Assembly: GCF_039654945.1 (NCBI RefSeq)
Contig: NW_027361869.1
Coordinates: 7,378,001-7,442,000 of the forward strand
DNA: 64,000 nt
Direction: 5' to 3'
DNA from: Dendrobates tinctorius
Taxonomy: Eukaryota
Below the pieces are notes generated by a model. The model had not been told where the DNA came from. It saw only the letters and a program-made list of their open reading frames with translations, and did no database searches. Each line of letters opens with the position of its first letter. Position 1 is the first letter of the stretch. The position numbers were made by a program, and so were the translations under genes. Shown piece after piece: positions 14,806-59,170 of the stretch.

Positions 14806-14964
<159 letters not shown>

Positions 14965-19189: not shown

Positions 19190-20711
19190 TCTGCAGGGAC
19201 GAGGTGGTGGCACCGATCATACAGGTCAGCAGGGACGAGGTGGTGGCACTCATTATAGAGCTCTGCCGGGATGAAGTGGTGGCACTGATCATACACCTCT
19301 GCAGCGACAAGGTGGTGGTACGGATCATACAGCTCTGCGAGGACCAGGTGGTGGCACTGATCATACACCTCTGCAGGGACGAGGAGGTGGCACTGATCAT
19401 ACACCTCTGCGGGGACAATGTGGTGACACTGATTATACACGTCTGTGGCGACAAGGTGCTGGTGCTGATCATACAGCTCTGCAGGGAGGAGGTGGTGGCA
19501 CTGATCATACAGCTCTGAAGGGAATAGGTGGTGGCACTGATCATAAAGTTCTGCAGTGACGAGGTGGTGGCACTAATCATACAGCTCAGCAGGGAGGAGG
19601 TGGTGGCACTGATCATACAGCTCAGCAGGGAGGAGGTGGTGACACTGATTATACAGCTCTGCAGGGATGAGGTAGTGGCACAGATCCTACAGACCTGCAG
19701 GGACAAGGTGGTGGCACTGATCATACAGCTTTGCGGGGACAATGTGGTTGCACTGATTATACATCTCTTTAGGTATAAGTTGGAGGCACTGATCATGCGG
19801 TTCTGAAGGGATGAGGTTGTGGCACTGATCATACAGCTCTGCAGGGATGAGGTAGTGGCACAGATCATACAGCTCTGCAGAGAGGAGATGGTGACACTGA
19901 TTATACAGCTTTGCAGTGAGGATATGGTGGCACTGATCATACAGCTCTGCGGGGACAATTTGATGGCACTGATCATACAGCTCTGCTCGGACAAAGTGTT
20001 GGCACTTATGATACAGCTTTGTGGGGACAAGGTGGTGGCACTGATCATACAGCTCTGCAGTGACGAGTTCGTGGCACTGATTATGCAGTTCTGCAGGCAT
20101 GAGGTAGTGGCACCGATCATACAGCTCTGCAGGGATGATTCAGTATCACAGATCATACAGCCCTGCAGGGATGAAGTGGTGGCACTGATCATACAGCTCT
20201 GCAGGGAAACGTTGGTGACACTGATCATACACCTCTGTGGCGACAAGGTGGTGGTACTGATCATACAGCTCTGCAAGGACCAGGTGGTGGCATTGATCAT
20301 AAAGCTCTGCAGGGATGAGGTGGTGGCACTGATCATACAGCTCTGCAGAGAGGAGGTGGTGGCACTGATTATACAGCTTTACAGGAAGGAGATGGTGGCA
20401 CTGATCATACAGCTCTGTGGGGACAATTTGATGGCACTGATCATACAGCTCTGCTCGGACAAAGTAGTGGCACTTATAATACAGCTTTGCGGGGACAAGG
20501 TGGTGGCACTGAACATATAGCTCAGCGTGGACAAGGTGGTGGCTCTGATCTTAAAGCTCTATAAGGATTAGGTGGAGGTACTAATCATACAGCTCTGCAG
20601 GGAGGAGGTGGTGGCCCTGATCATACAGCTCTGCGGGGACAAGGTGGTGGCACTGATCATGTAGCCCTGAGCGGAGGACGTGGTGGCACTGATCATACAG
20701 CTCTGCAAGGA

Positions 20712-20876
20712 AAAAATAACTCGAAGATGGATGGGAATGAGAAATCCCACAGGATAAAAAAGATGCTACATGAATGATAAAAATAATAACAATGATAATA
20801 ATAAATGGCACAATTTTTATTTTTTTAAATAAAGATGCCTTTATTAAAATATTGACACAACAATTAAGTGCATAAA

Positions 20877-20907
<31 letters not shown>

Positions 20908-21244
20908 TATATATTAGAGTATACAATCACATTAGCCATGTGTTTATGGATAATGGAAAACCAATCCATATCAAAAATTCTTAATTAATGAACCAGGTAC
21001 AAAAATGCATATATATAGAGACACAAGGATAATTATATAAAAAGAAAATAAATATATGTATAATGAATGTGCCCAAAGTGCAGAGGTGCAGCTGTGCAAA
21101 AAATTCAAATCGCACTAAGGCGTGTGCAACAAAACACAAAGTGTAAAATACCTGTAAGCCGATTGACGCTACGTGAGTTGTATAAGAACATGCCCCGACG
21201 GGCGTTTCGGAAATAAATCTCCTTCGTCAGGTGGATAGATACGC
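20712..21244 (-). mobile_element. Same AT-rich insert, copy 4
   Basis: Near-identical to the other copies with the same flanks. Confidence 0.55.
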
Positions 21245-22577
21245 CTGCAAGGAGTAGGCGGTGGCACTGATCATACAGCTCTGCGGGGACTAGGTGGTGG
21301 TAATGATCATACAGCTCTGTGCTGACCAACTGGTGGCACTGATCATACAGCTTTGCGGTGACAATGTGGTGGCACTGATTATACAGTTCGGCGGCGACAG
21401 GGTGGTGACACTGATCATACAGCTCTGCATGGAAAGGTGGTGGCACTGAACAAACAGCTCTGCAGGGAAAAGGTGGTGGCACTGAACATACAGCTCAGCG
21501 CGGACAAGGTGGTGGCACTGATCAGACAGCTCTACAGGGAGGAGGTGGTGGCACTGACCATACTTGTTTGCCGGGATAAGTTAGTGGCACTGATTATACA
21601 GCTCTGCAGTGAGAGGTGGTGGCACTGAAGATACAGCTCTACAGGGATGAGGTGGTTGCACTGATCATAAGGATCTGCAGGGACAAGGTTGTGTCACTGA
21701 TCTTAAAGCTCTGCAGGGATGAGGTGGTGGCACTGATCATACAGTTCTGCAGGGAGGAGGTGGTGGCACTGATCATACAGCTCTGTGTGGATAAGATGGT
21801 GGCAATGATCATACAGCTCTGCAGGGAGGAGTTGGTGGCACTGATCATACAGCTCTGCAAGGATGAGGTGTTGGCACTGATCATACAGCTTTGCGGGGAC
21901 AATGTGGTTGCACTGATTATATATCTCTTTAGGGATAAGTTGGAGGCACTGATCATGCGGTTCTGCAGGGAAAAGGTGGTGGCACTGAACATACAGCTCA
22001 GCGAGGACAAGGAGGTGGTACTGATCAGACAGCTCTACAGGGAGGAGGTGGTGGCACTGAACATACTTGTTTACAGGGATGAGGTAGTAGCACTGATCAT
22101 ACAGCTCTGCAGGGATGAGGTGGTTGCACTGATCATACAGCTCTTTGGGAAGGAGGCGGTGGCACTGATCATAAGGCTCTGCAGGGACCAGGTTGTGTCA
22201 CTGATCTTACAGCTCTGCATGGATGAGGTGGTGGCACTGATCATACAGTTCTGCAGGGAGGAGGTGGTGGCACTGATCATACAGCTTTGCGGGGACAATG
22301 TGGTTGCACTGATTATATATGTCTTTAGGGATAAGTTGGAGGCACTGATCATGCGGTTCTGCAGGGATGAGGTTGTGGCACTGATCATACTGCTCTGCGG
22401 GGACAAGGTGGTGACACTGATCATACACCTCTGCGGCGACAAGGTGGTGGTACTGATCATACAGCTCTGCAGGGAGGAGGTGGTGGCACTGATCACACAG
22501 CTCTGAAGGGAATAGGTGGTGGCACTGATCATACAGCTCTGCAGGGAATAGATGGTGGCACTGATCATAGAGTTCTG

Positions 22578-22828
22578 ATGATATTGGAGACTGCGGACAG
22601 ACTGTCACTGGCGTTCTGTATTACAGAGGGGTAAGGTCGGGGGAAGACGTATACAGTTGTGTGTCATCAGCATAAAGATGGTTCCGAAAGCCAAATTTGC
22701 TGATGGTCTGTCCAATTGGGGCTGTATAGAGCAAGAAGAGATGGGGGCCAAGGACTGAGCCCTGAGGTACCCAGAAAGCAAGAGGAAGAGGAGATGAAGT
22801 GGAGCCAGCGAACAAAACACTGAAGAAC
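22578..22828 (-). mobile_element. L2 RT fragment, copy 4
   Basis: ORF 22621-23034(-) contains VPQGSVLGP...[10 protein letters not shown]. Confidence 0.9.
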
Positions 22829-23025
22829 TCTGCAGAGACGAGGTGGTGGCACCGATTATACAGGTCAGCAGGGACGAGGTGGTGGCACTCATTATAGAGC
22901 TCTGCAGGGATGAAGTGGTGGCACTGATCATACAGCTCTGCGGGGAGGAGGAGGTGGCACTGATCATACAGGCCAAAATTGGGGTACTGGGTATGGCATG
23001 CGGATGGAGAGCACATTGATGCTGG

Positions 23026-23184
<159 letters not shown>

Positions 23185-23508
23185 TCATACAGCTCTGCAT
23201 TGACGAGGTGGTGGAACTGTTCATGCAGTTCTGCAGGGATGAGGTTGTGGCACTGATCATACAGCTCTGCAGGGAGGAGAGGAGGTAGTGGCACAGATCA
23301 TACAGCCCTGCAGTGACGAGGTGGTGGCACTGATCATACAGTTCTGCAGGGACAAGGTGGTGACACTGATCATACACCTCTGCAGCGACAAGGTGGTGGT
23401 ACTTATCATACAGCTCTGCGAGGACCAGGTGGTGGCACTGATCATAAAGCTCTGCAGAGAGGAGGTGGTGGCACTGATTAGACAGCTTTGCAGGGAGGAG
23501 ATGTTGGC

Positions 23509-24305
23509 TGTTGTGAGTTCATTTTCCCCTTCACTACTGAGGCCCGATGAACTCCCTCTTCTGGTAAAGAAAGGTAGTGAGCCTGATTATCAAACACCTG
23601 AGCCTAATGATGATGACTGGCTGAGTGGAGTTACTGACTGGATATAAGGCCGCCGACGCCCTTCTGCCCTGCGGGTGATTTCTCTGTGGGATCCTTGGAG
23701 ACCAGTCTGAATTCCTGCTCTTCTAAAGCTAAGTTTTCTGCTCGGCTTTTTGCATTTGTGCTTTGACTTTGTTTTGCTTTGTTTTTCTGGATTTCTGCCA
23801 TTCCCTGCTGGGGTGAGCTGAATTCCTTTAGCTCTGTCTTCTGAAAATACCTTAGTGCTGATTTAGTTTTTGAAGCCTAGCTGCTTCAGGGTCTTTTTCC
23901 ATATCAGCTTGTTGGCTTATGTCTTTGATATGGTTTTGGCAGATTGCAGACAGCAACCTTCCTTTCCTGTTCTGTTTAGTTAGCTTGGGCCCCATCGTTT
24001 GCTCAGCCAATCTTTCTATCTGTGTGAGTGTTTTTTCATCTTGCTTCACCGTCATTATATGTTGGGGGCTGCCTTTTACTTTGGGGTCTGCTCTGGGGCA
24101 GTTTAGATTTCCTTTTCTGTCTTTAGGCTATTTAGCTCTCCGGCTGTGATTGAGGGGTCTAGGGCACCGTAGGAACCCCCCACGGCTACTGGTAGTTGTG
24201 TTGATAGGTTCAGGGGTCTGCAGTCTGATAGTTGCCAACTTCTCTGGTTTTCTGGACGTAGCTTCTATTTTTGTGTCTGCCTCCTACGGTGACTCAATCA
24301 TAACA
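23509..24305 (+). repeat. 5' LTR
   Basis: TGTTGTGAG...TCATAACA. TATAA at 23643-23647. About 20 mismatches to the 3' LTR counted by eye. Confidence 0.95.
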
Positions 24306-29295: not shown

Positions 29296-30554
29296 GTTGG
29301 CACTGATCATACAGCTCTGCAGGGAGTAGGTGGTGGCACTGATCATACAGCTCTGCGGGGACAAAGTGGTGGCACTTATGTTACAGCTTTGCGGGGACAA
29401 GGTGGTGGCACTGATCATACAGCTCTGCAGGGAGGAGTTGGTGGCACTGAACATACAGCTCAGCGTGGACAAAGTGGTGGCACTGATCTTAAAGCTCTAC
29501 AAGGATGAGGTGGTGGTACTAATCATACAGCTCTGCAGGGAGGAGGTGGTGGCACTGATCATACAGCTCTGCGGGGACAAGATGGAGGCACTGATGATAA
29601 GGCTCTGCAGGGATGATGTGGTGGCACTGATCGTACAGGTCTGCAGGGATGAGGTGGTAGCACTCATCATACAGCTTTGCGTGGACAAGGTGGTGGCACT
29701 GATCATATAGCTCTGAGGGGATGACGTGGTGGCACTGATCAAATAGCTCTGCAGGGATTAGGTGGTGGCACTGATCATACAGCTCTGCAAGGAGTAGGCG
29801 GTGGCACTGATTCAACAGCTGTGCGAGGAGTAGGTAGTGGTACTGATCATACAGCTCTGTGCTGACCAACTGGTGGCACTGTTCATGCGGTGACAAGGTG
29901 GTAGCACTGATTATACAGTTCTGCGGCGACAAGGTGGGGGCACTGATCATACATGTCTGCAGGGAAAAGGTGGTGGCACTGAACATACAGATCAGCGCGG
30001 ACAAGGTGGTGGCACTGATCAGACAGCTCTACAGGGAGGAGGTTGTGGCACTAAACTGGTTTGCAGGGATGAGGTAGTGGCACTGATTATACAGCTCTGC
30101 AGTGAGAGGTGGTGGCACTGAAGATACAGCTGTGCAGGGATGAGGTGGTTGCACTGATCATACAGCTCTGCAGGGAGTAGGCGGTGGCACTGATCATACA
30201 GCTCTGCGGGGACTTGGTGGTGGTACTGATCATACAGCTCTGTGCTGACCAACTGGTGGCACTGATCATACAACTTTGTGGTGACAAGGTGGTGGCACTG
30301 ATTATACAGTTCTGCGGCTACAAGGTGGTGGCACTGATCATACAGGTCTGCAGGGATGAGTTGGTGGCACTGATCATGTAGCCCTGAGGGGATGACGTGG
30401 TGGCACTGATCAAATAGCTCTGCAGGGATTAGGTGGTGGCACTGATCTTACAGCTTTGCGGGGACAATGTGGTTGCACTGATTATATATCTCTTTAGGGA
30501 TAAGTTGGAGGCACTGATCATGCGGTTCTGCAGGGATGAGGTTGTGGCACTGAT
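29296..30554. repeat. 36-bp satellite, block 2
   Basis: Same monomer, resumes in register after the LTR. Confidence 0.95.
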
Positions 30555-34271: not shown

Positions 34272-37200
34272 CACTGATCATACAACTCTGCGGGGACAGG
34301 GTGGTGGTACTGATAATACAGCTCTGCAGGGAGGAGGTGGTGGTGCTGAACATACAGCTCTGCAGGGAAAAGGTGGTGGCACTGAACATACAGCTCAGCG
34401 TGGACAAGGTGGTGGTACTAATCAGACAGCTCTACAGGGAGGAGGTGGTGGCACTGAACATACTTGTTTGCAGTGATGAGGTAGTGGCACTGATCATACA
34501 GCTCTGCAGGGATGAGGTGGTGGCACTGAAGATACAGCTCTGCAGTGATGAGGTGGTTGCACTGATCATACAGCTCTGTGGGGAGGAGGCGGTGGCACTG
34601 ATCATAAGGCTCTGCAGGGACAAGGTTGTGTCACTGATCTTACAGCTCTGTAGGGATGAGGTGGTGGCACTGATCATACAGTTCTGCGGGGAGGAAGTGG
34701 TGGCACTGATCATACAGCTCTTCAGGGAGGAGGTGGTGGCACTGATCATACAGCTCTTCAGGAATGAGGTAGTGGCACAGATCATACAGCTCTGCAGAGA
34801 GGAGGTGGTGGCACTGATTATACAGCTTTGCAGGGATGAGGTAGTGGCACAGATCCTACAGACCTGCAGGGACAAGGTGGTGGCACTGATCATACAGCTC
34901 TGCAGTGACAAGGTGGTGACACTGATCATACACCTCTGCGGCGATAAGGTGGTGGTACTGATCATACAGCTCTGCAAGGACCAGGTGGTGGCACTGATCA
35001 TACAGCTTTGCGGGGACAATGTGTTTGCACTGATTATACATCTCTTAAGGTATAAGTTGGAGGCACTGATCATGCGGTTCTTCAGGGATGAGGTTGTGGC
35101 ACTGATCATACAGCTCTGCAGGGATGAGGTAGTGGCACAGATCATACAGCTCTTCAGGAATGAGGTAGTGGCACAGATCATACAGCTCTGCAGAGAGGAG
35201 GTGGTGGCACTGATTAAACAGCTTTGCAGGGATGAGGTAGTGGCACAGATCCTACAGACCTGCAGGGACAAGGTGGTGGCACTGATCATACAGCTCTGCA
35301 GGGACAAGGTGGTGACACTGATCATACACCTCTGCGGCGATAAGGTGGTGGTACTGATCATACAGCTCTGCAAGGACCAGGTGGTGGCACTAATCAAACA
35401 GCTCTGCAGAGACGAGGTGGTGGCACTGATTATACAGCTCTGCAGGGAGGAGATGGTGGCACTGATCATACAGCTCTGCAGGAAGTAGGAGGTGGCACTG
35501 ATTATACAGCTCTGTGTGGATAAGATGGTGGCACTGATCATACAGCTCTGCAGGGAGGAGTTGGTGGCACAGATCACACAGCTCTGCAGGGACGAGGAGG
35601 TGGCACTGATCATGCAGCTCTATAGGTAAGAGGTGATGTCACTGATCATACTGCTCTGCAGGGAAGAGGTGGTGACACTGATCAAACAGCTCTGCAAGGA
35701 CGAGGTGTTGGCACTGATCATACAGCTTTTCGGGGACAAAGTGGTTGCACTGATTATACATCTCTTAAGGTATAAGTTGGAGGCACTGATCATGCGGTTC
35801 TTCAGGGATGAGGTTGTGGCACTGATCATACAGCTCTTTAGGGATGAGGTAGTGGCACAGATCATACAGCTCTGCAGAGAGGAGGTGGTGGCACTGATTA
35901 TACAGCTTTGCAGGTAGGAGATGGTGGCACTGATCATAAAGCTCTGCAGGGAGTAGGTGGTGGCACTGATCATACATCTCTGCGGGGAGAATTTGATTGC
36001 ACTGATCATACAGCTCTGCGGGGAGAATTTGATTGCACTGATCGTACAGCTCTGCTCGGACAAAGTGGTGGCACTTATGATACAGCTTTGTGGGGACAAG
36101 GTGGTGGCACTGATCATACAGCTCTGCAGTGGCTAGGTTGTGGCACTGATCATGCAGTTCTGCAGGGATGAGGTAGTGGCACAGATCATATAGCTCTGTA
36201 GGGATGAGGTAGTGGCACAGATCATACAGCTTTGCAGGGAGGAGATCGTGGTACTGATCATAAAACTTTGCAGGGAGTAGGTGGTGGCACTGATCATACA
36301 GCTCTGCGGGGACAATTTGATGGCACTGATCATACAGCTCTGCTCGGACAAAGTGGTGGCACTTATGATACAGCTTTGTGGGGACAAGGTGGTGGCACTG
36401 ATCATACAGCTCTGCAGTGACTAGGTTGTGGCACTGATCATGCAGTTCTGCAGGGATGAGGTGGTGGCACTGATCATACAGCTCTGCAGGGAAAATTTGG
36501 TGACACTGATCATACACCTTTGCGTCGACAAGGTGGTCGTACTGATCATACAGCTGTGCAAGGACCAGGTGGTGGCACTGATCATAAAGCTCTGCAGAGA
36601 GGAGGTGGTGGCACTGATTATACAGCTTTGCAGAGAGGAGATGGTGGCACTGATCTGTGGGGACAATTTGATGGCACTGATCAAACAGCTCTGCTCAGAC
36701 AAAGTGGTGGCACTTATGATACAGCTTTGCGGGGACAAGGTGGTGGCACTGAACATATAGCTCAGCGTGGACAAGGTGGTGGCTCTGATCTTAAAGCTCC
36801 ACAAGGATGAGGTGTAGGTACTAATCATACTGCTCTGCAGGGAGGAGGTGGTGGCACTGATCATACAGCTCTGCGGGGACAAGATGGTGGCACTGAACAT
36901 GAAGATCTGCAGGGATGATGTGGTGGCACTGATGATACAGTTCTGCAGAGATGAGGTGGTAGCACTCCTCATACAGCTTTGCAGGGACGAGTTGGTGGCA
37001 CTGATCATACAGCTTTTCATGGACAAGGTGGTGGCACTGATCAAACAGCTCTGCAAGGACGAGGTGTTGGCACTGATCATACAGCTTTGCGGGGACAATG
37101 TGGTTGCACTGTTTCTACATCTCTTTAGGTATAAGTTGGATGCACTGATCAGGGATGATGTTGTGGCACTTATCATACAGCTCTGCAGGGATGAGGTAGT

Positions 37201-40200
37201 GGCACAGATCATACAGCTCTGCAGAGAGGAGGTGGTGGCACTGATTACACAACTTTGCAGGGAGGAGATGGTGGCACTGATCATACAGCTCTGCTCGGAC
37301 AAAGTGGTGGCACTTATGATACAGCTTTGTGGGGACAAGGTGGTGGCACTGATCATACAGCTCTGTAGTGACGAGGTTGTGGCACTGATCATGCAGTTCT
37401 GCAGGGATGAGGTAGTGGCAGCGATCATACAGCTCTGCAGGGATGATTCAGTAGCACAGATCATACAGCCCCGCAGGGATGAGGTGGTGGCACTGATCAT
37501 ACAGCTCTGCAGTGAAAAGTTGGTGACACTGATCATACACCTCTGCGGCGACAAGGTGTTGGTACTGATCATACAGCTCTGCAAGGACCAGGTGGTGGCA
37601 CTGATCATAAAGCTCTGCAGAGAGGAGGTGGTGGCACTGATTATTCAGCTTTGCAGGGAGCAGATGGTGGCACTGATCATACAGCTCTGTGGGGACAATT
37701 TGATGGCACTGATCATACAGCTATGCTCGGACAAAGTGGTGGCACTTATGATACAGCTTTGCGGGGACAAGGTGGTGGCACTGAACATATAGCTCAGCGT
37801 GGACAAGGTGGTGGCTCTGATCTTAAAGCTCTACAAGGATGAGGTGGAGGTACTAATCGTACAGCTCTGCAGGGAGGAGGTTGTGGCACTGAGCAAACAG
37901 CTCTGCATGGAAAGGTGGTGGCACTGAACATACAGCTCAGCGTGTACAAGGTGGTGGCACTGATCAGACAGCTCTACAGGGAGGAGGTTGTGGCACTGAA
38001 CATACTGGTTTGCAGGAATGAGGTAGTGGCACTGATCATACAGCTCTACAGGTATGAGGTGATGGCACTGAAGATACAGCTCTGCAGGGATGAGGTGGTT
38101 GAACTGATCTTGCAGCTCTGCAGGGAGTAGGTGGTGGCACTGATCATAAAGCTCTGCGGGGACAATTTTATGGCACTGATCATACAGCTCTGCTCGCACA
38201 AAGTGGTGGCACTTATCATACAGCTTTGTGGGGACAAGGTGGTGGCACTGATCATGCACTTCTGCAGGGATGAGGTAGCGGCACCGATCATACAGCTCTG
38301 CAGGTATGATTCAGTAGCACAGATCATACAGCCTGCAGGGATGAGGTGGTGGCGTGTCACTGATCATACAGCTCTGCAGGGAAAAGTTGGTGACACTGAT
38401 CATACACCTCTGCGGCGACAAGGTGGTGGTAATGATCATACAGCTCTGCAAGGACCAGGTGGTGGCACTGATTATACAGCTCTGCAGGGATTAGATGGTG
38501 GCACTGATCATACAGCTCTGCAGGCAGTAGGAGGTGGCACTGATTATACAGCTCTGTGTGGATAAGGTGGTGGCACTGATCATACAGCTCTGCAGGGAGT
38601 AGTTGGTGGCACTGATCATGCAGCTCTGCAGGTAAGAGGTGGTGTCACTGATCATACAGCTCTGCAGGGACAATGTGGTTGCACTGATTATACATCTCTT
38701 TAGGTATAAGTTGGAGGCACTGATCATGTGGTTCTGCAGGGATGAGGTTGTGGCACTGATCATACAGCTCTGCTCGGACAAAGTGGTGGCACTGATCATA
38801 CAACTTTGCGGTGACAAGGTGGTGGCACTGATTTACAGTTCTGTGGCGACACGGTGGTGGCACTGATCATACAGGTCTGCAGGGAGGAGGTTGTCGCACT
38901 GAACATACTGGTTTTCAGGGATGAGGTGGTGGCACAGATCATACAGCTCTGCAGAGAGGAGGTGGTGGCACTGATTATACAGCTTTGCAGGGAGGAGATG
39001 GTGGCACTGATCATACAGCTCTGCAGGGAGTAGGTGGTGGCACTGATCATACAGCTCTGCGGGGACAATTTGATGGCACTGATCATACAGCTCTGCTCGG
39101 ACAAAGTGGTGGCACTTATGATACAGCTTTGTGGGGACAAGATGGTGGCACTGATCATACAGCTCTGCAGTGACGAGGTTGTGGCACTGATCATGTAGTT
39201 CTGCTGGGATGAGGTGGTGGCACTGATCATACAGCTCTGCGGGGACAAGATGGTGGCACTGAACATGAAGATCTGCAGGGATGATGTGGTGGCACTGATG
39301 ATACAGTTCTGCAGAGATGAGGTGGTAGCACTCCTCATACAGCTTTGCAGGGACGAGTTGGTGGCACTGATCATACAGCTTTTCATGGACAAGGTGGTGG
39401 CACTGATCAAACAGCTCTGCAAGGACGAGGTGTTGGCACTGATCATACAGCTTTGCGGGGACAATGTGGTTGCACTGTTTCTACATCTCTTTAGGTATAA
39501 GTTGGATGCACTGATCAGGGATGATGTTGTGGCACTTATCATACAGCTCTGCAGGGATGAGGTAGTGGCACAGATCATACAGCTCTGCAGAGAGGAGGTG
39601 GTGGCACTGATTACACAACTTTGCAGGGAGGAGATGGTGGCACTGATCATACAGCTCTGCTCGGACAAAGTGGTGGCACTTATGATACAGCTTTGTGGGG
39701 ACAAGGTGGTGGCACTGATCATACAGCTCTGTAGTGACGAGGTTGTGGCACTGATCATGCAGTTCTGCAGGGATGAGGTAGTGGCAGCGATCATACAGCT
39801 CTGCAGGGATGATTCAGTAGCACAGATCATACAGCCCCGCAGGGATGAGGTGGTGGCACTGATCATACAGCTCTGCAGTGAAAAGTTGGTGACACTGATC
39901 ATACACCTCTGCGGCGACAAGGTGTTGGTACTGATCATACAGCTCTGCAAGGACCAGGTGGTGGCACTGATCATAAAGCTCTGCAGAGAGGAGGTGGTGG
40001 CACTGATTATTCAGCTTTGCAGGGAGCAGATGGTGGCACTGATCATACAGCTCTGTGGGGACAATTTGATGGCACTGATCATACAGCTATGCTCGGACAA
40101 AGTGGTGGCACTTATGATACAGCTTTGCGGGGACAAGGTGGTGGCACTGAACATATAGCTCAGCGTGGACAAGGTGGTGGCTCTGATCTTAAAGCTCTAC

Positions 40201-43200
40201 AAGGATGAGGTGGAGGTACTAATCGTACAGCTCTGCAGGGAGGAGGTTGTGGCACTGAGCAAACAGCTCTGCATGGAAAGGTGGTGGCACTGAACATACA
40301 GCTCAGCGTGTACAAGGTGGTGGCACTGATCAGACAGCTCTACAGGGAGGAGGTTGTGGCACTGAACATACTGGTTTGCAGGAATGAGGTAGTGGCACTG
40401 ATCATACAGCTCTACAGGTATGAGGTGATGGCACTGAAGATACAGCTCTGCAGGGATGAGGTGGTTGAACTGATCTTGCAGCTCTGCAGGGAGTAGGTGG
40501 TGGCACTGATCATAAAGCTCTGCGGGGACAATTTTATGGCACTGATCATACAGCTCTGCTCGCACAAAGTGGTGGCACTTATCATACAGCTTTGTGGGGA
40601 CAAGGTGGTGGCACTGATCATGCACTTCTGCAGGGATGAGGTAGCGGCACCGATCATACAGCTCTGCAGGGATGATTCAGTAGCACAGATCATACAGCCT
40701 GCAGGGATGAGGTGGTGGCGTGTCACTGATCATACAGCTCTGCAGGGAAAAGTTGGTGACACTGATCATACACCTCTGCGGCGACAAGGTGGTGGTACTG
40801 ATCATACAGCTCTGAAGGGAATAGGTGGTGGCACAGATCCTACAGACCTGCAGGGACAAGGTGGTGACACTGATCATACACCTCTGCGGCGACAAGGTGG
40901 TGGTAATGATCATACAGCTCTGCAAGGACCAGGTGGTGGCACTAATCATACAGCACTGCAGAGACGAGGTGGTGGCACTGATTATACAGCTCTGCAGGGA
41001 TTAGATGGTGGCACTGATCATACAGCTCTGCAGGCAGTAGGAGGTGGCACTGATTATACAGCTCTGTGTGGATAAGGTGGTGGCACTGATCATACAGCTC
41101 TGCAGGGAGTAGTTGGTGGCACTGATCATGCAGCTCTGCAGGTAAGAGGTGGTGTCACTGATCATACAGCTCTGCAGGGACAATGTGGTTGCACTGATTA
41201 TACATCTCTTTAGGTATAAGTTGGAGGCACTGATCATGTGGTTCTGCAGGGATGAGGTTGTGGCACTGATCATACAGCTCTGCTCGGACAAAGTGGTGGC
41301 ACTGATCATACAACTTTGCGGTGACAAGGTGGTGGCACTGATTTACAGTTCTGTGGCGACACGGTGGTGGCACTGATCATACAGGTCTGCAGGGAGGAGG
41401 TTGTCGCACTGAACATACTGGTTTTCAGGGATGAGGTGGTGGCACAGATCATACAGCTCTGCAGAGAGGAGGTGGTGGCACTGATTATACAGCTTTGCAG
41501 GGAGGAGATGGTGGCACTGATCATACAGCTCTGCAGGGAGTAGGTGGTGGCACTGATCATACAGCTCTGCGGGGACAATTTGATGGCACTGATCATACAG
41601 CTCTGCTCGGACAAAGTGGTGGCACTTATGATACAGCTTTGTGGGGACAAGATGGTGGCACTGATCATACAGCTCTGCAGTGACGAGGTTGTGGCACTGA
41701 TCATGCAGTTCTGCTGGGATGAGGTAGTGGCACAGATCATACAGCTCTGCAGGGATGTTTCAGTAGCACAGATCATACAGCCCTGCAGGGATGAGGTGGT
41801 GGCACTGATCATACACCTCTGCGGCGACAAGGTGGTGGTACTGATCATACAGCTCTGCAAGGACCAGGTGGTGGCACTGATCTTAAAGCTCTGCAGGGAT
41901 GAGGTGGTGGCACTGATCATACAGCTCTGCAGAGAGGAGGTGGTGGCACTGATTATACAGCTTTGCAGGGAGGATATGGTAGCATTGATCATTCAGCTCT
42001 GTGTGGATAAGATGGTGGCACTGATCATACAGCTCTGCAAGGACGAGGTGTTGGCACTGATCATACAGCTTTGCGGGGACAATGTGGTTGCACTGATTAT
42101 ACATCTCTTTAGGGATAAGTTGGAGCCACTGATCATGCAGCTCTGCAGGGATGAGGTTGTGGCACTGATCATACAGCTCTGCAGGGATGAGTTAGTGGCT
42201 CAGATCATACAGCTCTGCAGGGATGAGGTAGTGGCACAGATCACACAGCTCTGCAGGGACGAGGAGGTGGCACTGATCATACAGCTCTGTGGTGAGGAGG
42301 CGGTGGCACTGATCATAAGGCTCTGCAGGGACAAGGTTGTGTCACTGATCTTACAACTCTGCAGGGAGTAGGTGGTGGCATTGATCATTCAGCTCTGTGT
42401 GGATAAGATGGTGACACTAATCATGCAGCTCTGCAGGTATGAGGTGGTGTCACTGATTATACAGCTCTGCAGGGAAGAGGTGGTGACACTGATCATACAG
42501 CTCTGCAAAGACGAGGTGTTGGCACTGATCATACAGCTTTGTGGGGACAATGTAGTTGCACTGATTATACATCTCTTTAGGGATAAGTTGGAGCCACTGA
42601 TCATACAGCTCTGCAGGGACGAGGAGGTGGCACTGATCATACAGCTCTGTGGAGACAAGGTGGTGGCACTGATAATACACCTCTGCGGCGACAACGTGGT
42701 GGTACTGATCATACAGCTCTGCAGAGAGGAGGTGGTGACACTGATCATACAGCTCTGAAGGGAATAGGTGGTGGCACTGATGATACAGCTCTGTAGGGAT
42801 GAGGTGGTTGCACTGATCATACAGCTCTATGGGGAGGAGGCGGTGGCACTGATCATAAGGCTCTGTAGGGACAAGGTTGTGTCACTGATCTTACAGCTCT
42901 GCAGGGAGTAGGTGGTGGCATTGATCATTCAGCTCTGTAGGGAAGAGGTGGTGACACTGATCATAAAGCTCTGCAGGGATGAGGTAGTGGCACAGATCAC
43001 ACAGTGCTGCAAGGACCAGGTGGTGGCACTGATCACACAGCTCTGCAGGGACGAGGAGGTGGCACTGATCATACAGCTCTGCGGGGACAAGGTGGTGACA
43101 CTGATAATACACCTCTGAGGCGACAAGGTGGTGGTACTGATCATACAGCTCTGCAGAGAGGAGGTGGTGGCACTGATCATACAGCTCTGAAGGGAATATG

Positions 43201-45269
43201 TGGTGGCACTGATCATAAAGTTCTGCAGTGACGAGGTGGTGGCACTAATCATACTGCTTTGCAGGGAGGAGGTGGTGGCACTGATCATACAGCTCAGCAG
43301 GGAGGACGTGGTGGCACTGATTATACAGCTCAGCAGGGACAAGGTGGTGGCACTGATCATACAGCTTTGCGGGGATAATGTGGTTGCACTGATTATACAT
43401 CTCTTTAGGGATAAGTTGGAGGCACTGATCATGCAGTTCTGCAGGGATGAGATAGTGGCTCAGATCATACAGCTCTGCAGGGACGAGGAGGTGGCACTGA
43501 TCATACACCTCTGCGGCCACAAGGTGGTGGTACTAATCATACAGCTCTGCAGTGACGAGGTTGTGGCACTGATTATGCAGTTCTGCAGGGATGATGTAGT
43601 GGCACCGATCATACAGCTCTGCAGGGATGATTCAGTAGAACAGATCATACAGCCCTGTAGGGATGAGGTGATGGCACTGATCATACAGCTCTGCAGGGAA
43701 AAGTTGGTGACACTGATCATACAGCTCTGCTCGCACAAAGTGGTGGCACTTATGATACAGCTTTGTGGGGACAAGGTGGTGGCACTGATCATGCAGTACT
43801 GCAGGGATGAGGTAGTGACACCGATCATACAGCTCTGCAGGTATGATTCAGTAGCACAGATCATACAGCCTGCAGGGATGAGGTGGTGGCACTGATCATA
43901 CACCTCTGCGGCGACAAGGTGGTGTTACTGATCATACAGCTCTGCAAGGACCAGGTGGTGGCACTAATCATACAGCTCTGCAGAGACAAGGTGGTGGCAC
44001 TGATTATACAGCTCTGCAGGGAGGAGGTTGTCGCACTGAACATACTGGTTTGCAGGGATGTGGTGGTGGCACAGATCATACAGCTCTGCAGAGAGGAGGT
44101 GGTGGCACTGATTATACAGATTTGCAGGGAGGAGATGGTGGCACTGATCATACAGCTCTGCAGGGAGTAGGTGGTGGCACTGATAATAGAGCTCTCCCGG
44201 GATAATTTGATGGCACTGATCATACAGCTCTGCTCGGACAAAGTGGTGGCACTTATGATACAGCTTTGTGGGTACAAGATGTTGGCACTGATCATACAGC
44301 TCTGCAGTGATGAGGTCGTGGCACTGATCATGCAGTTCTGCAGGGATGAGGTAGTGGCACCGATCATACAGCTCTGCAGGGATGTTTCAGTAGCACAGAT
44401 CATACAGCCCTGCAGGGATGAGGTGGTGGCACTGATCATACAGCTCTTCAGGGAAAAGTTGGTGACGCTGATCATACACCTCTGCGGCGACAAGGTGGTG
44501 GCACTGATTATACAGTTCTGCGGCGACAAGGTGGTGGCACTGATCACACAGGTCTGCAGGGAAAAGGTGGTGTTATTGAACATACAGCTCAGCGCGGACA
44601 AGGTGGTGGCACTGATCAGACAGCTCTACAGGGAGGAGGTTGTGGCACTAAACATACTGGTTTGCAGGGATGAGGTTGTGGCACTGATCATACAGCTCTG
44701 CAGGGAGGAGGTGGTGGCACTGATCATACAGCTCTGCAGGGAATAGGTGGTGGCACTGATCGTACAGCTCTGCTGGGACAAGATGGTGGTACTGATCATA
44801 AAGCTCTGCAGGGATGATGTAGTGGCACTGATCATACAGGTTTGCAGAGACGAGGTGGTGGCACTGATCATACAACTTTTCGTGGACAAGGTGGTGGCAC
44901 TGATCAGACAGCTTTGCGTGTACAAGGTGGTGGCACTAATCAGGTAGCCCTGAGGGGATGACGTGGTGGCACTGATCAAAAAGCTCTGCAGGGATTAGGT
45001 GGTGGCACTGATCATACAGCTCTGCAAGGAGTAGGTGGTGGCACTGATCATACAGCTTGCGTTGACAATGTGGTGGCACTGATTATACAGTTCTGCGGCG
45101 AAAAGGTGGTGGCACTGATCATACAGCTCTGCATGTAAAGGTGGTGGCACTGAACATACAGCTCTGCAGGGAAAAGGTGGTGGCACTGAACATACAGGTC
45201 AGCAGGGACGAGGTGGTGGCACTCATTATAGAACTCTGCAGGGGTGAAGTGGTGGCACTGATCATACAG
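34272..45269. repeat. 36-bp satellite, block 3
   Basis: Same monomer. Contains a 2366-bp tandem duplication. Ends about 1 kb from the H2A 3' end. Confidence 0.97.
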
Positions 45270-46287: not shown

Positions 46288-46328
46288 CAGCTCTTGTGGC
46301 GACGGTGTGGGTGGCTCTTAGAAGAGCC
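46288..46328 (-). terminator. H2A 3' stem-loop (46313-46328, GGCTCTTCTAAGAGCC) and HDE (AAGAGCTG, 46288-46295)
   Basis: Matches the replication-dependent histone stem-loop consensus, followed by ACCCA and a purine-rich U7 site. Confidence 0.95.
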
Positions 46329-46361
46329 TTTGGTGTTGTGGACAGAGATCGGCGGCAGCGC

Positions 46362-47449
<1,088 letters not shown>

Positions 47450-47483
47450 TCTGCTCAGTCTGCTGCTCCGCCATCACCCCAAA

Positions 47484-47524
47484 GGCTCTTCTAAGAGCCA
47501 CCACCCCATCTCCATCAGAGCTGT
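47484..47524 (+). terminator. H2B 3' stem-loop (47484-47499) and HDE (AGAGCTGT, 47517-47524)
   Basis: AAA-GGCTCTTCTAAGAGCC-ACCA...CAGAGCTGT. Confidence 0.95.
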
Positions 47525-49277: not shown

Positions 49278-49779
<502 letters not shown>

Positions 49780-49809
49780 TTGTATTCTCTTCTGTGCTGA
49801 TAACCCAAA

Positions 49810-49825
49810 GGCTCTTTTCAGAGCC
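49810..49825 (+). terminator. H4 3' stem-loop
   Basis: GGCTCTTTTCAGAGCC followed by ACCCA. Weaker HDE-like GAGAGGCT at about 49843-49850. Confidence 0.95.
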
Positions 49826-51479
49826 ACCCACATCTTCTACCTGAGAGGCTACGATTTCCTATTCCTGCATTCTGGTGCCTGTAAGTATACTAGTTGTCAC
49901 AGCCTGGCATGTGTCTTGCACTTTCCTCCTTCCATACTGGAGCTGGCACCGCGGACTTGGGGTGATGTGGTTTATTCTCCTTGACCTATAATATACAGCT
50001 GCCAGGTTCTGGGGGCATACAGTATATCCGCACTGTGCAGCACAGACATCTCTGCACCACAGTACATACCTCGCTGTGATGTGGTCACTACAGAGCAGAA
50101 ATCCAAGTTCTGCCGTGAGATGAACGTGATTCTGCTACAGGTCTTACTGATCAGATCAGTGTGTGTGTCAGGAGGCAGCGAATACTCCCGGGGATTGTCG
50201 CTGGATAGATGCGCCTCCCCCAAAGGCTCCTATCAGAGCCGCACACATGTGTTCTGGAGAAGCTACAATTCCTGATATTTGATGACTGCGGTGATGGAGT
50301 CTGGTCAGATCCTATTTCTCAGGATTGGTGTAAATCCAGTGAGGAGCGGTCACCTCCTGTACCGGTAACTGCTCCCCCTTGTTAGTGGCGGCTCCCCGGT
50401 ATGTCCAGCGCCTGCATCTCATCACTACCACCCTCCTCATTTACCATCTACATGTGGCCACTGATTGTGACCTCCTGACTGCTCCTAATAACATGGACTG
50501 GAGCTACAGCCGGCAGCGGTCTCCTGTGCTCGGGCTGATGGATGAAGCCGCTCCCTCCCCGCAGCCGGACATTAGCGGCTCGTTCCCCTCATGACGGGGA
50601 GGTTTCTGGTGTCTTATCCTATTTATCAGTAGTCGGAGCCAGAAGAGAGAACAGAGTCCGCACCCCGAATGTACAGCGCCGTCATCCGAGCCCGGCGGAC
50701 CATAGCGAGGACTGGAGATGAGGCGGCTCCGGAGCCTGTGTATTTCTGAGTGCGGAGAGCGCCATCCCTCCAGAGGAGAAAAAGTCTCGCATACAAGATA
50801 ACTGCATAAATGTGGTTGGTGAGATAATGAGCAGCGGCCACCGTTCTGGGGATTGAGGGGTTAATACAATCTCACTTTACCACATGAGCTGCAGGTATAA
50901 TGGCCGCTTACTCCTGACAGTGATTGGGAAATGATGTCTCTTCCACAAGCAGAGAACAGTCACTGAAGGGTTAATGATCGAGGGCCGAGAGCACGACTGA
51001 GCGGGAGATTCAAATCATCAAACGGTTATAAAGCTCCGCCCACAGGAACCGACCAATCGATAGACGTGCTTCCTCCTACGTTTAACTCCTTATTGCCCTT
51101 CTACCTGCTGCTCCTCATGTACACGTGTTCTCCCGGCAGCGCTCAGCACATCGGGCTCCTCCTGGTAGAACATGTGCGGATTGTATCATCCGATCTGTGC
51201 TAGATGCGGCCTCCTGTGATCAGTGCGGACCCCACACGGAGACGCCCAGATATAACGTTACCGGGTCTCCGTGTGGGGTCCGCTCCGATCACTGCTGGAA
51301 GTGGAGTTGAGACTGATCAGCCCTGGAGCTGCAGGCAATGTATACACACCCCGTACGGTGCTGCACATCCTCCATACCACCTACTGGGTGGTATACAGCA
51401 CTACAAAGCCTACGTGTGCTGTATACTCCCCATCTAGTGCTGCAGACACAAATCCGAGAGCATCTGTTCTATATAAGCC

Positions 51480-54027: not shown

Positions 54028-54599
<572 letters not shown>

Positions 54600-54910: not shown

Positions 54911-55991
54911 GGCACCGATCATACAGCTCTGCGGGGAGGAGGTGGAGGCACTGATCATACAGCTCTGCGGGGACAGGGTGGTGGCACTGATCATACAGCT
55001 CTGCGGGGAGGAGGTGGAGGCACTGATCATACAGCTCTGCGGGGACAGGGTGTTGGCACTGATCATACAGCTCTGCGGGGAGGAGGTGGAGGCACTAATC
55101 ATACAGCTCTGCGGGGAGGAGGTGGAGGCACTGATCATACAGCTCTGCGGGGACAGGGTGGTGGCACTGATCATACAGCTCTGCGGGGAGGAGGTGGAGG
55201 CACTGATCATACAGCTCTGCGGGGAGGAGGTGGAGGCACTGATCATACAGCTCTGCGGGGACAGGGTGGTGGCACTGATCATACAGCTCTGCGGGGAGGA
55301 GGTGGAGGCACTGATCATACAGCTTTGCGGGGACAGGGTGGTGGCACTGATCATACAGCTCTGCGGGGAGGAGGTGGTGGCACTAATCATACAGCTCTGC
55401 GAGGACAGGGTGGTGGCACTGATCATACAGCTCTGCGGGGACAGGGTGGTGGCACTAATCATACAGCTCTGCGGGGACTGGGTGGTGGCACTAATCATAC
55501 AGCTCTGCGGGGGACAAGGTGGTGGCACTAATCATACAGATCTGCGAGGACAGGGTGGTGGCACTGATCATACAGCTCTGCGGGGACAGGGTGGTGGCAC
55601 TAATCATACAGCTCTGCGGGGACAGGGTGGTGGCACTGATCATACACCTCTGCGGGGACAGGGTGGTGGCACTGATCATACAGCTCTACGAGGACAGGGT
55701 GGTGGCACTGATCATACAGCTCTGCGGGGACAGGGTGGTGACTCAGATCATACAGCTCTGCGGGGACAGGGTGGTGGCACTGATCATACAGCTCTGCGGG
55801 GACAGGGTGGTGGCACTAATCATACAGCTCTGCGAGGACAGGGTGGTGGCTCAGATCATACAGCTCTACGAGGACAGGGTGGTGGCACCGATCATACAGC
55901 TCTACGAGGACAGGGTGGTGGCTCAGATCATACAGCTCTGCGAGGACAGGGTGGTGGCACTGATCATACAGCTCTGCGGGGACAGGGTGGT
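54911..55991. repeat. 36-bp satellite, block 4 (about 30 homogeneous monomers abutting the H1 stem-loop)
   Basis: Monomers GGGGACAGGGTGGTGGCACTGATCATACAGCTCTGC and GGGGAGGAGGTGGAGGCACTGATCATACAGCTCTGC, much less diverged than the other blocks. Confidence 0.97.
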
Positions 55992-56007
55992 GGCTCTGAA
56001 AAGAGCC
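55967..56007 (-). terminator. H1 3' stem-loop (55992-56007) and HDE (AGAGCTGTA, 55967-55975, inside the first satellite monomer)
   Basis: Minus strand reads AAA-GGCTCTTTTCAGAGCC-ACCACCCTGTCCCCGC-AGAGCTGTA-TGATCAGTGCC-ACCA... Confidence 0.93.
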
Positions 56008-56034
56008 TTTGTGTAAAATAACTGGGTCCGCAAC

Positions 56035-56652
56035 TTATTTCTTGGCCGCGGGCTTCTTGGCTTTCTTAGCCGGACTCTTGGCAGCTTTAGGTTTGGCCGC
56101 CTTTTTAGCCGGACTCTTCGTCGCCTTCTTAGGCTTGGGAGCGGCTTTCGACTTCTTGGGGCTCTTGGCCGCTTTCTTGGCAGCTGCGGGCTTCTTGGCC
56201 TTTTTCGGGCTCTTCTTGGCCGTGGTCAGAGCCTTCTTGGGCTTCTTCGGAGATTTGGCGGCTTTCTTAGCAGCAACGGGTTTCTTGGGCTTGGCTGCTG
56301 ACTTCTTGGCCACTTTAGTCTCCTGCTTCTTGTTGAGTTTGAAGGACCCGGAGGCGCCGCTGCCCTTCACCTGGAGGAGGGTGCCCTTGGTGACCAGAGA
56401 CCTGACGGCCAGCTTCAGGCGGCTGTTGTTCTTCTCTACATCGTACCCTCCGGCAGACAGCGCCTTCTTCAGGGCGGCCAGAGACACCCCACTGCGCTCC
56501 TTAGAGGCTGACACGGCTTTCACGATCAGCTCGGAGACGCCAGGACCGGAGGATTTCTTGCTGCTCTTGGCGGCGGATTTCTTTGGCTGCTTCTTGGCTT
56601 TGGCAGCCGGTTCTGCGGGAGGGGGAGCGGCGGCTAGCGCGGTCTCTGCCAT
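56035..56652 (-). CDS. H1: Linker histone H1, somatic replication-dependent type (205 aa)
   Basis: [15 protein letters not shown]...[30 protein letters not shown]...[14 protein letters not shown] plus K/A/P-rich tail with SPKK motifs. Stem-loop present. Confidence 0.97.
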
Positions 56653-56723
56653 CCTTATGCTACGGAGCCAAAACACAAAAATCTCCCGATAGGAAAACAC
56701 TAAGGCCGGAGCTGGAGGAGTCT

Positions 56724-56893
56724 GTTATATGTACAGGCTTACTGTGCACTGATTGGCTGCTGAGCTACAGGCTTACTGTGCACTGATTGGCTGCTGAGCT
56801 ACACCGTCCTGAGCATCTATTGGCTGACACTGCATACATGCCCCGCCTCTTCCCAGCTGAGAACGAGTGAAGCTCCGCTCTCCCCTTGTGCTT
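56724..56893 (-). promoter_or_regulatory. H1 promoter
   Basis: ATATAA (minus) at 56725-56730. CCAAT at 56752, 56786 and 56819. GC box at 56841-56847. H1-box-like AAGCACA at about 56887-56893. Confidence 0.75.
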
Positions 56894-57588
56894 CCCTGCC
56901 CGGAATAAAAGCCCTTTACCGGCTGACACCGGACAGCAGAGCGCGCTTCCTCCGCCGCTTTTTCTTCGCCATCTTCTCCACCGACCGTCTGTAGCTGTCA
57001 CTAGCAGAGACGCCGGGGAAGAGCGGAGAGGAGGTCCCGGGATCATCGCCGTCGTCCTCCAGATCTGCACATCGCTGTGTATCCGGGAAGATACATCTGC
57101 TGGGGGAACTCGTTCCTCCTGTTCCCGGCTCCTGTCACCATCACAGGGATCTTTACTACAATGTCTATCGTACAGGACGCTGATTGTACGATGTGGGGAC
57201 GACCTGGAGCTGCTGAGAGCCCAGAAGGGTAACACAGGCGATGGCTCCGCTGACTGCCGCCTCCCTGACCTGTGACCTCCCTGTACCCCGTATGTGCGGA
57301 GTATTGGGGGTGACAGATGCTCCACATCAGGAGATGATCCACATCGGCTGATTGCAATGACCTGCTAAAATCTGGTCTCACCCATTGTGGAGCTGTGACC
57401 GCTGAGGCCTGTAATGGTGGAAGAGAACTGATAAGGGGCAGCTTCATAATGCGACTCACTCCCCAACCAGACGCATCTCCGGGGAGAAAACTGTGAGATA
57501 TTCCTGGATTTATGTGACCCAACTATTGTGCAAAAGGGGAATATTGGGAGAAAAGAGGAGACACAAAATCCAATTTCTACACACAGAG

Positions 57589-58914
57589 CACAGCTGTATA
57601 GGGATGAGGTGGTGGCACTTATCATAAAGCTCTGCAGGGATGAAGTGGTGGCACTGATGATACAGGTGTGCAGGGACGAGGTGGTGGCACTGATCATACA
57701 GCTCTGCAGGGAGTAGGTGGTGGCACTGATCATACAGCTCTGTGTGGATAAGATGGTGGCACTGATCATGCAGCTCTGCAGGGATGAGGTTGTGGCACTG
57801 ATCATACAGCTCTGCAGGGATGAGGTAGTGGCACAGATCACACAGCTCTGCAAGGACCAGGTGGTGGCACTGATCATACAGCTCTGCGGCGACAAGGTGG
57901 TGGTACTGATCATACAGCTCTGCAGAGAGGAGGTGGTGGCACTGATCATACAGCTCTGAAGGGAATGTGTGGTGGCACTGATCATAAAGTTCTGCAGTGA
58001 CGAGTTGGTAGCACTAATCATACTGCTTTTCAGGGAGGAGGTGGTGGCACTGATCATACAGCTCTGCAGGAATGAGGAGGTGGCACTGATCATACAGCTC
58101 TGCGGGGACAAGGTGGTGACACTGATAATACACCTCTGCGGCGACAAGGTGGTGGCACTGATCATACAGCTCTGCGGGGACAAGGTGTTGGTACTGATCA
58201 TACAGCTCTGCAAGGACCAGGTGGTGGCACTTATCATACAGCTCTGCAGAGAGGAAGTGGTGGCACTGATCATACACCTCTGCGGCGACAAGGTGTTGGT
58301 ACTGATCATACAGCTCTGCAAGGACCAGGTGGTGGCACTTATCATACAGCTCTGCAGAGAGGAGGTGGTGGCACTGATCATGCAGCTCTGCTCGGACAAA
58401 GTGGTGGCACTTATGTTACAGCTTTGCAGGGACAAGGTGGTGGCAATGATAATACAGCTCTACAAGGATGAGGTGGTGGTACTAATCATACAGCTCTGCA
58501 GGGAGGAGGTGGTGGCACTGATCATACAGCTCTGCGGGGACAAGATGGTGGCACTGATCATAAAGCTCTGAGGGGATGACGTGGTGGCACTGATCAAATA
58601 GCTCTGCAGGGATTAGGTGGTGGCACTCATCGTACAGCTCTGCAAGGAGTAGGCGGTGGTACTGATCATACAACTTTGCGGCGACAAGGTGGTGGCACTG
58701 ATCATACAGGTCTGCAGGTAAAAGGTGGTGGCACTGAACATACAGCTCAGCGCGGACAAGGTGGTGGCACTGATCAGACAGCTCTACATGGAGGAGGTTG
58801 TGGCACTGAACATACTGGTTTGCAGGGATGAGGTAGTGGCACTGATCATACAGCTCTGCAGGTATGAGGAGGTGGCACTGAAGATACAGCTGTGCCTGGA
58901 TGAGGTGGTTGCAC
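57589..58914. repeat. 36-bp satellite, block 5
   Basis: Same monomer variants and orientation as blocks 1-3. Confidence 0.96.
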
Positions 58915-59170
58915 CATATATATTTTATATATATATATATAATTGTGTGTGTGTGAAACAAACTGGGGCGTTCATCAGGCCCCCCTGTCATAGCCCCCAT
59001 CAGCACCATGGGATCAAAAGGGCAAGAAAACAAGCAACTGGGAAAATACCCTTACCATAAATATTTGGCTGCGCTAAAGGAGAATTGGGCGCCTGCACCT
59101 GGCACCTACAGTGTATGGAGTGGGCTCAGCACCTGAGCCCGCTTCATACATCCACCCCCTCCTTAGTACG

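Follow-up and report, generated by a model that had tools for sequence, protein, structure and literature searches.

The 3' end of the H1 gene

The window studied here is a stretch of 64,000 nucleotides (contig NW_027361869.1, positions 7,378,001 to 7,442,000, forward strand) that holds one histone cluster, with the genes H1 (-), H3 (-), H4 (+), H2B (+) and H2A (-), together with a 36-bp tandem repeat that starts in the 3'-processing signal of H1 and is the subject of this analysis. In all five genes a stem-loop is followed, 16-19 nt past the stem, by an AGAG-type histone downstream element (HDE). The H1 coding sequence (56035..56652, minus strand, 205 amino acids plus stop) was recognized by the Pfam family Linker_histone (PF00538, E 1.4e-21), and exactly this protein is encoded in GCA_039654945.1. 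Upstream of it, direct reading identified a putative promoter at 56700..56830 (-), with three CCAAT motifs and the TATA-like ACATATAA. This region includes a 34-bp tandem duplication at 56732-56803 (-), which Tandem Repeats Finder (TRF) reports with period 34, 2.1 copies and 100% matches. The duplication doubles a CCAAT motif, and a contig from another organism (coded D) has a single copy, skipping 34 bp at 56734-56769.

The 3' stem-loop of H1, GGCTCT-TTTC-AGAGCC, was located at 55992..56007 (-) with Rfam RF00032 and a motif scan. The first-pass annotation of this DNA had proposed that the repeat is a tandem copy of the processing signal, and the arrangement is indeed of this kind: the stem-loop (56007-55992) passes without any junction into 30 units of 36 bp, the minus strand reading GGCTCTTTT-CAGAGCC-ACCA-CCCTGTCCCCGC-AGAGCTGTA-TGAT and then repeating from CAGTGCC-ACCA-... 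onwards. TRF delimits the array at 54911-55999 (period 36, 30.2 copies, 91% matches, 0% indels). An ungapped scan divides it into 30 units running from 55998 to 54918, one of them 37 bp long, plus a 7-nt partial unit (CGGTGCC) at 54917-54911, and we place the H1-adjacent array at 54911..55998 on the minus strand.

Unit 1 (55963..55998, minus strand), defined by direct reading, the unit list and a pattern scan, is the predicted processing signal of H1. It begins with the last base of the loop, followed by the 3' stem arm (C+AGAGCC, 55998-55992), ACCA (55991-55988), a 12-nt spacer CCCTGTCCCCGC (55987-55976), the HDE AGAGCTGTA (55975-55967) and TGAT (55966-55963). The sequences lying 5' to the C at 55998, GGCTCTTTT in H1 and GCTGTATGAT at the end of a repeat unit, are not similar, and because the resemblance stops there the repeat register must begin within the hairpin loop.

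Taken together, the stem-loop and unit 1 score 35.9 bits with the Rfam Histone3 model (RF00032) at 56012-55966, above the gathering score of 34. ACCA comes straight after the stem and the HDE at a normal distance (10-15 nt or so past the cleavage site being usual), AGAGCTGTA beginning 16 nt past the stem compared with 17-19 nt in the other four histone genes. Among the units, only unit 1 with its stem-loop forms a hairpin of 16 nt with a 6-bp stem and a 4-nt loop that reaches the RF00032 gathering score, whereas units 2-30 and the bulk units elsewhere in the window have the 3' arm only, usually mutated to CAGTGCC. In the region 45000-59200 no unit other than unit 1 matched Histone3 even at E<=1, the matches being restricted to the five gene ends. 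The copies past unit 1 are half-signals without a hairpin. By the established mechanism of histone 3'-end formation, SLBP would bind the H1 stem-loop at 56007-55992, the U7 small nuclear ribonucleoprotein (U7 snRNP) would pair with AGAGCUGUA at 55975-55967 and the H1 pre-mRNA would be cleaved at or next to ACCA, near 55988.

The 36-bp repeat and its complementarity to U7

The pattern GCCACCA-N12-AGAGCTGTA occurs 184 times in the window, always on the minus strand, and never in 100 shuffles. Altogether 939 units, every one oriented as H1, make up 53% of the window, and 891 of the unit-to-unit spacings are exactly 36 bp. These long, head-to-tail arrays in a single orientation, with higher-order and segmental structure, identify the repeat as satellite DNA. 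The array next to H1 differs from the bulk in several respects. Its units differ pairwise by 12%, compared with 21-23% in the bulk, and C at position 14 is present in 21 of its 30 units as against 11 of the 909 bulk units. Its proximal units have the spacer CCCTGTCC(C/T)CGC, while the distal units alternate with others reading TCCA-CCTCCTCCCCGC; AGAGCTGTA is kept in 27/30 units and CG at positions 21-22 in all 30. We considered units 3, 5 and 8, which have A at position 4 (GAGCC or GAGTC), as retained ancestral copies, but attach no weight to this idea, since the three units were copied from each other and GAGCC is found in 12 bulk units as well.

The 5' ends of human and mouse U7 small nuclear RNA have been given as (C/A)AGUGUUACAGCUCUUUUAG (PMC7026596, PMC12360213). 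The nine-nucleotide complementarity to U7 that had been claimed for the HDE holds for both species, AGAGCUGUA being a perfect complement of their UACAGCUCU; H1 thus provides nine contiguous pairs with a mammalian U7 whose sequence may differ from that of the host. The first-pass annotation had recommended computing the duplex energy with the U7 of the species itself; with the human U7 5' 20-mer the energy is -14.5 kcal/mol for H1, which lies between the extremes of -9.9 and -18.7 kcal/mol obtained for H2A, H2B, H3 and H4. With the same 20-mer the repeat units have a median of -13.0 kcal/mol and shuffled units a mean of -6.85 kcal/mol. No U7 gene was detected at the gathering level in the whole window or at E<=1 in 45000-59200.

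H1 3' flanks in other frogs

The flanks of outgroup H1 genes were read from annotated H1 protein models that run through the stop codon, comparing the possible codons of each residue with the window sequence. The single-copy ancestor that had been suggested as a test of the histone origin appears to exist in Pseudophryne corroboree (Myobatrachoidea), where two H1 flanks are read as carrying the spacer of unit 1 and AGAGCTGT. In model P0013, at least 2 of 24 nt differ when PSCPGRAV is aligned with CCA CCC TGT CCC CGC AGA GCT GTA (permutation p = 0.001), and in model P0009 at least 1 of 21 nt differs when TLSRQSC is aligned with ACC CTG TCC CCG CAG AGC TGT (permutation p < 0.001). The spacer and HDE of Pelobates fuscus P0044 and Gastrophryne carolinensis P0097 gave a weaker fit (permutation p ~0.03 each), and two fish-like tails included as controls gave none (permutation p 0.97). 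Compatibility with unit 1 ends directly past AGAGCTGT(A) in all four frog models, and downstream sequence that is not repeated can be read in two of them only, namely Pseudophryne P0013, with ~55 non-periodic residues after the HDE match, and Gastrophryne (~34 residues). The spacer and HDE of unit 1 look like an old, H1-specific flank, and because they appear to lie in single copy behind H1 in non-hyloid frogs, the H1-type flank is probably older than the satellite. With a unit homologous to its source, and a source that reads as single-copy in the outgroup at the protein level, the repeat has the features of a satellite derived from a gene element. Separately, one Pristimantis contig stops inside H1, and two contigs from the Logan assemblies with unrelated AT-rich flanks appear fish-like.

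The repeat itself appears next to H1 in a poison frog. The Ranitomeya imitator H1 model P0010 (Dendrobatidae), whose tail ends in PPPPPRRAV, covers the stem-loop and about two satellite units in the same register. The first part of this tail can be matched, with a minimum of 4 differences over 51 nt, to the stem-loop, unit 1 and the initial CAGTGC of unit 2; past a one-base shift, the second part fits CCA CCA CCT CCT CCC CGC AGA GCT GTA with 0 differences in 27 nt, and the model stops at the TGA of the unit. Both the unit borders and the T at position 4 are those of the window. Contigs from runs of three other organisms, known to us by code, also carry units of the 36-bp family, and a 93-nt contig of organism D, with 5 differences, reaches from the H1 coding end across the stem-loop into the HDE. 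A protein search with the translated open reading frame (ORF) of the satellite produced no matches, and one with the Ranitomeya read-through tail returned only the tail itself.

The families Bufonidae and Dendrobatidae both belong to Hyloidea, and their split is some tens of millions of years old. If the single Ranitomeya model is right and the window genome is that of Rhinella marina, as a listing in PMC12822217 would have it, the junction between H1 and the satellite seems to predate this split, and on the same Rhinella marina premise the satellite probably grew from the H1 signal before toads and poison frogs diverged.

Bulk arrays and their history

Outside the H1-adjacent array, TRF and the unit scan delimited three bulk arrays on the minus strand: 37 units upstream of H1 (57585..58916), 297 scored units starting ~1 kb downstream of the H2A 3' end (34277..45260) and 33 units in a segment between a LINE (long interspersed nuclear element) and an LTR (long terminal repeat) retrotransposon insertion (29306..30552). 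A fourth domain (1..23512, minus strand) contains 542 scored units and is broken by repeated non-satellite pieces and three relics of the cluster. The array starts adjoin unique sequence at unit position 29; in particular, the array at 34277..45260 begins at this position (TGTATGAT) and not at a stem-loop. Internal segmental duplications measure 2.37-2.51 kb in this array and 4.89-4.91 kb in the domain at 1..23512, with offsets of 4890, 4910, 2366 and 2510 bp for the duplications located at 5408-15057 and 36845-41700. Duplicated along with the satellite are 255-bp LINE fragments (9434-9688, 14344-14598, 18925-19179 and 22564-22818) and AT-rich blocks of ~500 bp. The two retroelement insertions are an LTR retrotransposon at 23513-29305, with gag-pol ORFs on the plus strand (24150-28637), and a LINE at 30553-34276, with ORFs on the minus strand (30934-34241) and an ATA-repeat tail (30553-30591).

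The three relics (22963-23183, 14743-14963 and 9833-10053, minus strand) are 221 bp long and each starts with a satellite unit. Each consists of the last third of H3 and its 3' untranslated region up to the hairpin loop (96% identical to 54131-53985), fused to the border sequence of the big array (45332-45261). As the relics join the H3 end to the big-array border that lies below H2A, whole cluster units appear to have collapsed into the satellite. The deletion joint is in the hairpin loop (TTYCAG), the same spot at which the satellite starts at H1.

Two clades were distinguished among the bulk units. Clade 1 (168 units) is H1-like, with TG at positions 15-16 and CG at 21-22, and clade 2, larger and derived, has C[G/A/C] at 15-16 and TG at 21-22. 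An ancestral spacer CCTCGTCCCCGC, from which unit 1 would have been derived by CpG decay (positions 15-16 read TG 278 times, CA 210 times and CG 61 times), was entertained and then overturned by Pseudophryne P0013. Because this model has TGY at positions 15-17, TG at 15-16 would be the ancestral state and a CG-type sequence the founder of the larger bulk clade only.

Origin of the satellite

We consider it highly probable, from the sequence comparisons above, that the 36-bp satellite arose when part of the H1 pre-mRNA 3'-processing signal was amplified in tandem, with unit 1 still serving as the working signal and the other units most likely neutral. An origin at a histone 3' end, with unit 1 as the H1 HDE, had been put forward in the first-pass annotation, and the exact junction, the nine-nucleotide complementarity to U7 and the Pseudophryne flanks all support it. 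The amplified piece would extend from the last base of the stem-loop's loop to 4 nt past the U7-binding HDE, and slippage or unequal exchange could have produced the first copies, both fitting the present evidence alike. Subsequently, unequal exchange and large segmental duplication would have spread the units into the cluster spacers, engulfing collapsed cluster units, and units 2-30 and the ~900 bulk units, deprived of the 5' stem arm, would most likely be neutral by-products.

Several observations weigh against this interpretation. The pairing with U7 was judged from the human and mouse RNAs, the U7 of the host being absent from the window. The bulk arrays have no stem-loop start, so that we infer their descent from the H1-adjacent array, and positions 14-16 and 21 set most of their units apart from unit 1. 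The Ranitomeya imitator case is one gene model of one assembly; the comparison between species was made at the protein level, where codon degeneracy leaves positions such as 14 ambiguous; and Pseudophryne P0009 ends 4 residues past the HDE. In addition, the 3' signal of one Ranitomeya variabilis H1 copy is of another kind, resembling that of H4, which means that H1 genes can exchange their 3' ends.

The opposite order of events, in which an unrelated, pre-existing satellite with a chance likeness to the signal entered the H1 3' end by recombination, had been named at the outset as the alternative, and it could draw on the bulk arrays, which exceed the H1-adjacent array in age and by far in size, and have no stem-loop starts. 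We regard it as very improbable, given the flank read in the outgroups, where H1 has not only the motifs but also the spacer in common with unit 1; moreover, we estimate that GCCACCA and AGAGCTGTA would meet by chance at the right spacing at ~1e-6 per satellite family, in line with their absence from the 100 shuffles. An assembly artefact at the array or the junction is less credible still: satellites are often mis-assembled and their copy numbers in assemblies are unreliable, but satellite contigs were found in three other organisms and the Ranitomeya imitator gene model has the same junction.

A refinement of the H1-signal origin deserves more attention. Because unit 1 is in register with the array, unequal exchange could swap its spacer and HDE for those of an array unit, and if array units can replace unit 1 in this way, the formation of the H1 3' end would depend on whichever unit sits first. 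The satellite could thus have come from an ancient H1 signal while the present unit 1 is an array unit placed there by in-register exchange, a course of events that we find quite conceivable although we lean somewhat against it. It would account for the unit-1 spacer of Ranitomeya imitator (CT.CT.CC.GC), which is not of the CCCTGTCC type and corresponds to a variant (type b) of the distal and bulk units of the window that is missing from the outgroup H1 flanks. It also agrees with the position-14 C, nearly private to the H1-adjacent array (21/30 vs 11/909) and read as T at 55949 in contigs of organisms B, C and D, and with the greater uniformity of this array (12% vs 21-23%). On the other hand, unit 1 of the window has TGT at positions 15-17, like Pseudophryne P0013 (TGY), and could therefore be the retained ancestral flank, and the outgroup proteins cannot resolve position 14. 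Overall, these comparisons suggest that in-register exchange can overwrite unit 1.

Does the array have a function?

Since the satellite is read as copies of a processing signal, we also weighed whether the copies are used. Read-through of H1 and H2A would give sense RNA with tens to hundreds of HDEs that could recruit U7 snRNP, and the tandem arrays would then be a working part of the hyloid histone locus that captures U7 snRNP, with possible roles in fail-safe cleavage or termination before the H3 promoter, as a U7 sink, or as the scaffold of a histone locus body rich in U7. Such a role would explain the persistence of the junction since before toads and poison frogs diverged, and we nevertheless think it unlikely. 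For it speak the sense orientation of all 939 units downstream of the minus-strand genes H1 and H2A, the perfect HDE in 27/30 H1-adjacent units and the seeming conservation of the junction between two frog families, when the window genome is taken as that of a toad. Amphibian histone loci reportedly have bodies attached to them in which U7 is found (Wu and Gall 1993, cited in PMC5054213), which we also counted on this side. HDE-like motifs in human LTR12 repeats are, furthermore, reported to be acted on by U7 (PMC11417402).

The opposing evidence comes from conservation and from sequencing depth. The units have no stem-loop, and conservation of the HDE in the bulk does not exceed that of the other positions: the 9-mer survives in 345/909 bulk units (38%), and identity per position is 83-95% in the HDE (~90% for the block) and 87-92% in the other blocks, so that the U7-pairing motif does not stand out from its neighbours. 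The bulk arrays decay evenly, with pairwise differences of 21-23% and inserted transposable elements. Depth was taken from contigs of the Logan assemblies for four runs that we guessed to be RNA, contigs that cannot show absence. The satellite:H1 depth ratio of 21-24 in runs X2 and X12 is approximately the number of H1-type units per H1 gene, and an X12 contig also covers the H1 promoter, so this signal resembles DNA carry-over; in run X6, H1 has a depth of up to ~20,000 vs 3-169 on the satellite. Past unit 1 there is no sign of function in the conservation or depth data, and the intactness of the H1-adjacent units (27/30 perfect HDEs) fits youth and selection through exchange with unit 1 alike.

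Other genes and features of the cluster

Histone H3 (54028..54438, minus strand; Pfam Histone PF00125, E 8e-49) has its stem-loop at 53996-53981 and an HDE-like AGAAGAGCG (Rfam 34.7 bits), and its start codon lies 472 bp past the distal end of the H1-adjacent array. H4 and its 3' signal occupy 49468..49850 on the plus strand (coding 49468-49779; Rfam, Pfam and motif scan). H2B with its signal (47070..47524, plus strand) is partly masked with N at 47170-47306 and has a stem-loop at 47484-47499 and the HDE AGAGCTGT, scoring 31.9 bits in Rfam, below the gathering score. H2A with its signal (46288..46766, minus strand; coding 46766-46362) has a stem-loop at 46328-46313 and the HDE AAGAGCTG, with 30.8 bits, also below gathering. 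H4, H1 and H3 hence pass the Histone3 gathering score, and H2B and H2A fall just short of it.

The first-pass annotation had also noticed that the major monomer resembles the H2B 3' flank. The flank that it quoted is present (47484-47524), but the H2B spacer is no closer to the monomer than shuffled sequence (p 0.09-0.23), which led us to reject H2B as the source of the satellite; for the H1 spacer the similarity to that of the monomer exceeds that of shuffled sequence (p 0.013). As far as the sequences can tell, the likeness between H2B and the monomer is one of common functional motifs (GCCACCA, AGAGCTGT) and C-rich composition only.

Downstream of H4, at a distance of 412 bp from its signal, a second, degenerate stem-loop and HDE (GGCTCCTATCAGAGCC ... 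GGAGAAGCT) was observed at 50217-50275 (+). Both the H4 flank and the read-through 3' flank of the Ranitomeya variabilis H1 model P0001 (...GCSYQSRPHLLLEKL...) are similar to this element, which may be the remnant of the 3' end of a gene since lost. At 59171-63489 the window further contains a 127-bp tandem repeat of 34 copies with 99% identity, which includes the octamer ATTTGCAT.

Comparison with known systems

A full-text literature search, directed at the monomer, at toad satellites and at satellites in connection with the histone downstream element, retrieved no description of the 36-bp monomer, and the one published toad satellite that it yielded, BamHI-800 (PMC9385698), is unrelated to it. 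Satellites made from parts of genes are known, as in the case of 5S rDNA (ribosomal DNA), and our search found no described satellite built from an mRNA 3'-processing signal. If the origin proposed here is correct, the birth of a satellite can be read at this locus with its source, its breakpoints inside the hairpin loop, its outgroup state and its later spread. As the first unit would still be the gene's own signal, the 3'-end formation of an essential gene would be tied to the turnover of a satellite. Thousands of perfect U7 target motifs inside a histone locus would likewise offer a natural test of U7 snRNP titration or of recruitment without SLBP.

Compared with the canonical histone 3' signal (stem-loop, ACCCA and an HDE that pairs with U7), the H1 stem-loop and unit 1 have every element at normal spacing and pass RF00032. 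The difference is that here the piece between the last base of the loop and the fourth nucleotide past the HDE is present in 30 tandem copies, with ~900 more nearby, the copies lacking the 5' arm.

The nearest precedent from a gene family is PcP190, a hyloid frog satellite that originated in the transcribed part of 5S rDNA (PMC11675491, PMC4201667). Each is a frog satellite traced to a functional element of a tandem multigene family and present in more than one family of frogs, as read here from the Ranitomeya model. PcP190, however, has units of ~190 bp taken from the body of an RNA gene, whereas the units described here have 36 bp and would stem from an mRNA processing signal; the present satellite, moreover, stays linked to its source locus and its first unit is predicted to serve the gene still.

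In the newt Notophthalmus, long tracts of satellite DNA are reported to lie between the histone clusters and to be transcribed by read-through on lampbrush loops (Stephenson, Diaz, Gall and co-workers 1981). In both cases amphibian histone clusters are embedded in satellite that lies downstream of histone genes. The newt satellite is reportedly transcribed, while the present one is known from DNA alone, and to our knowledge the newt satellite has not been described as derived from a histone 3' signal.

Finally, HDE-like motifs are found in human HERV1/LTR12 repeats, which are repressed by U7 snRNA (PMC11417402). Like the present arrays, they are repeated DNA that matches the 5' end of U7 perfectly at sites other than a normal histone 3' end, and they differ in being dispersed LTRs unrelated to histone genes, whereas here the motif would have been inherited from a histone gene.

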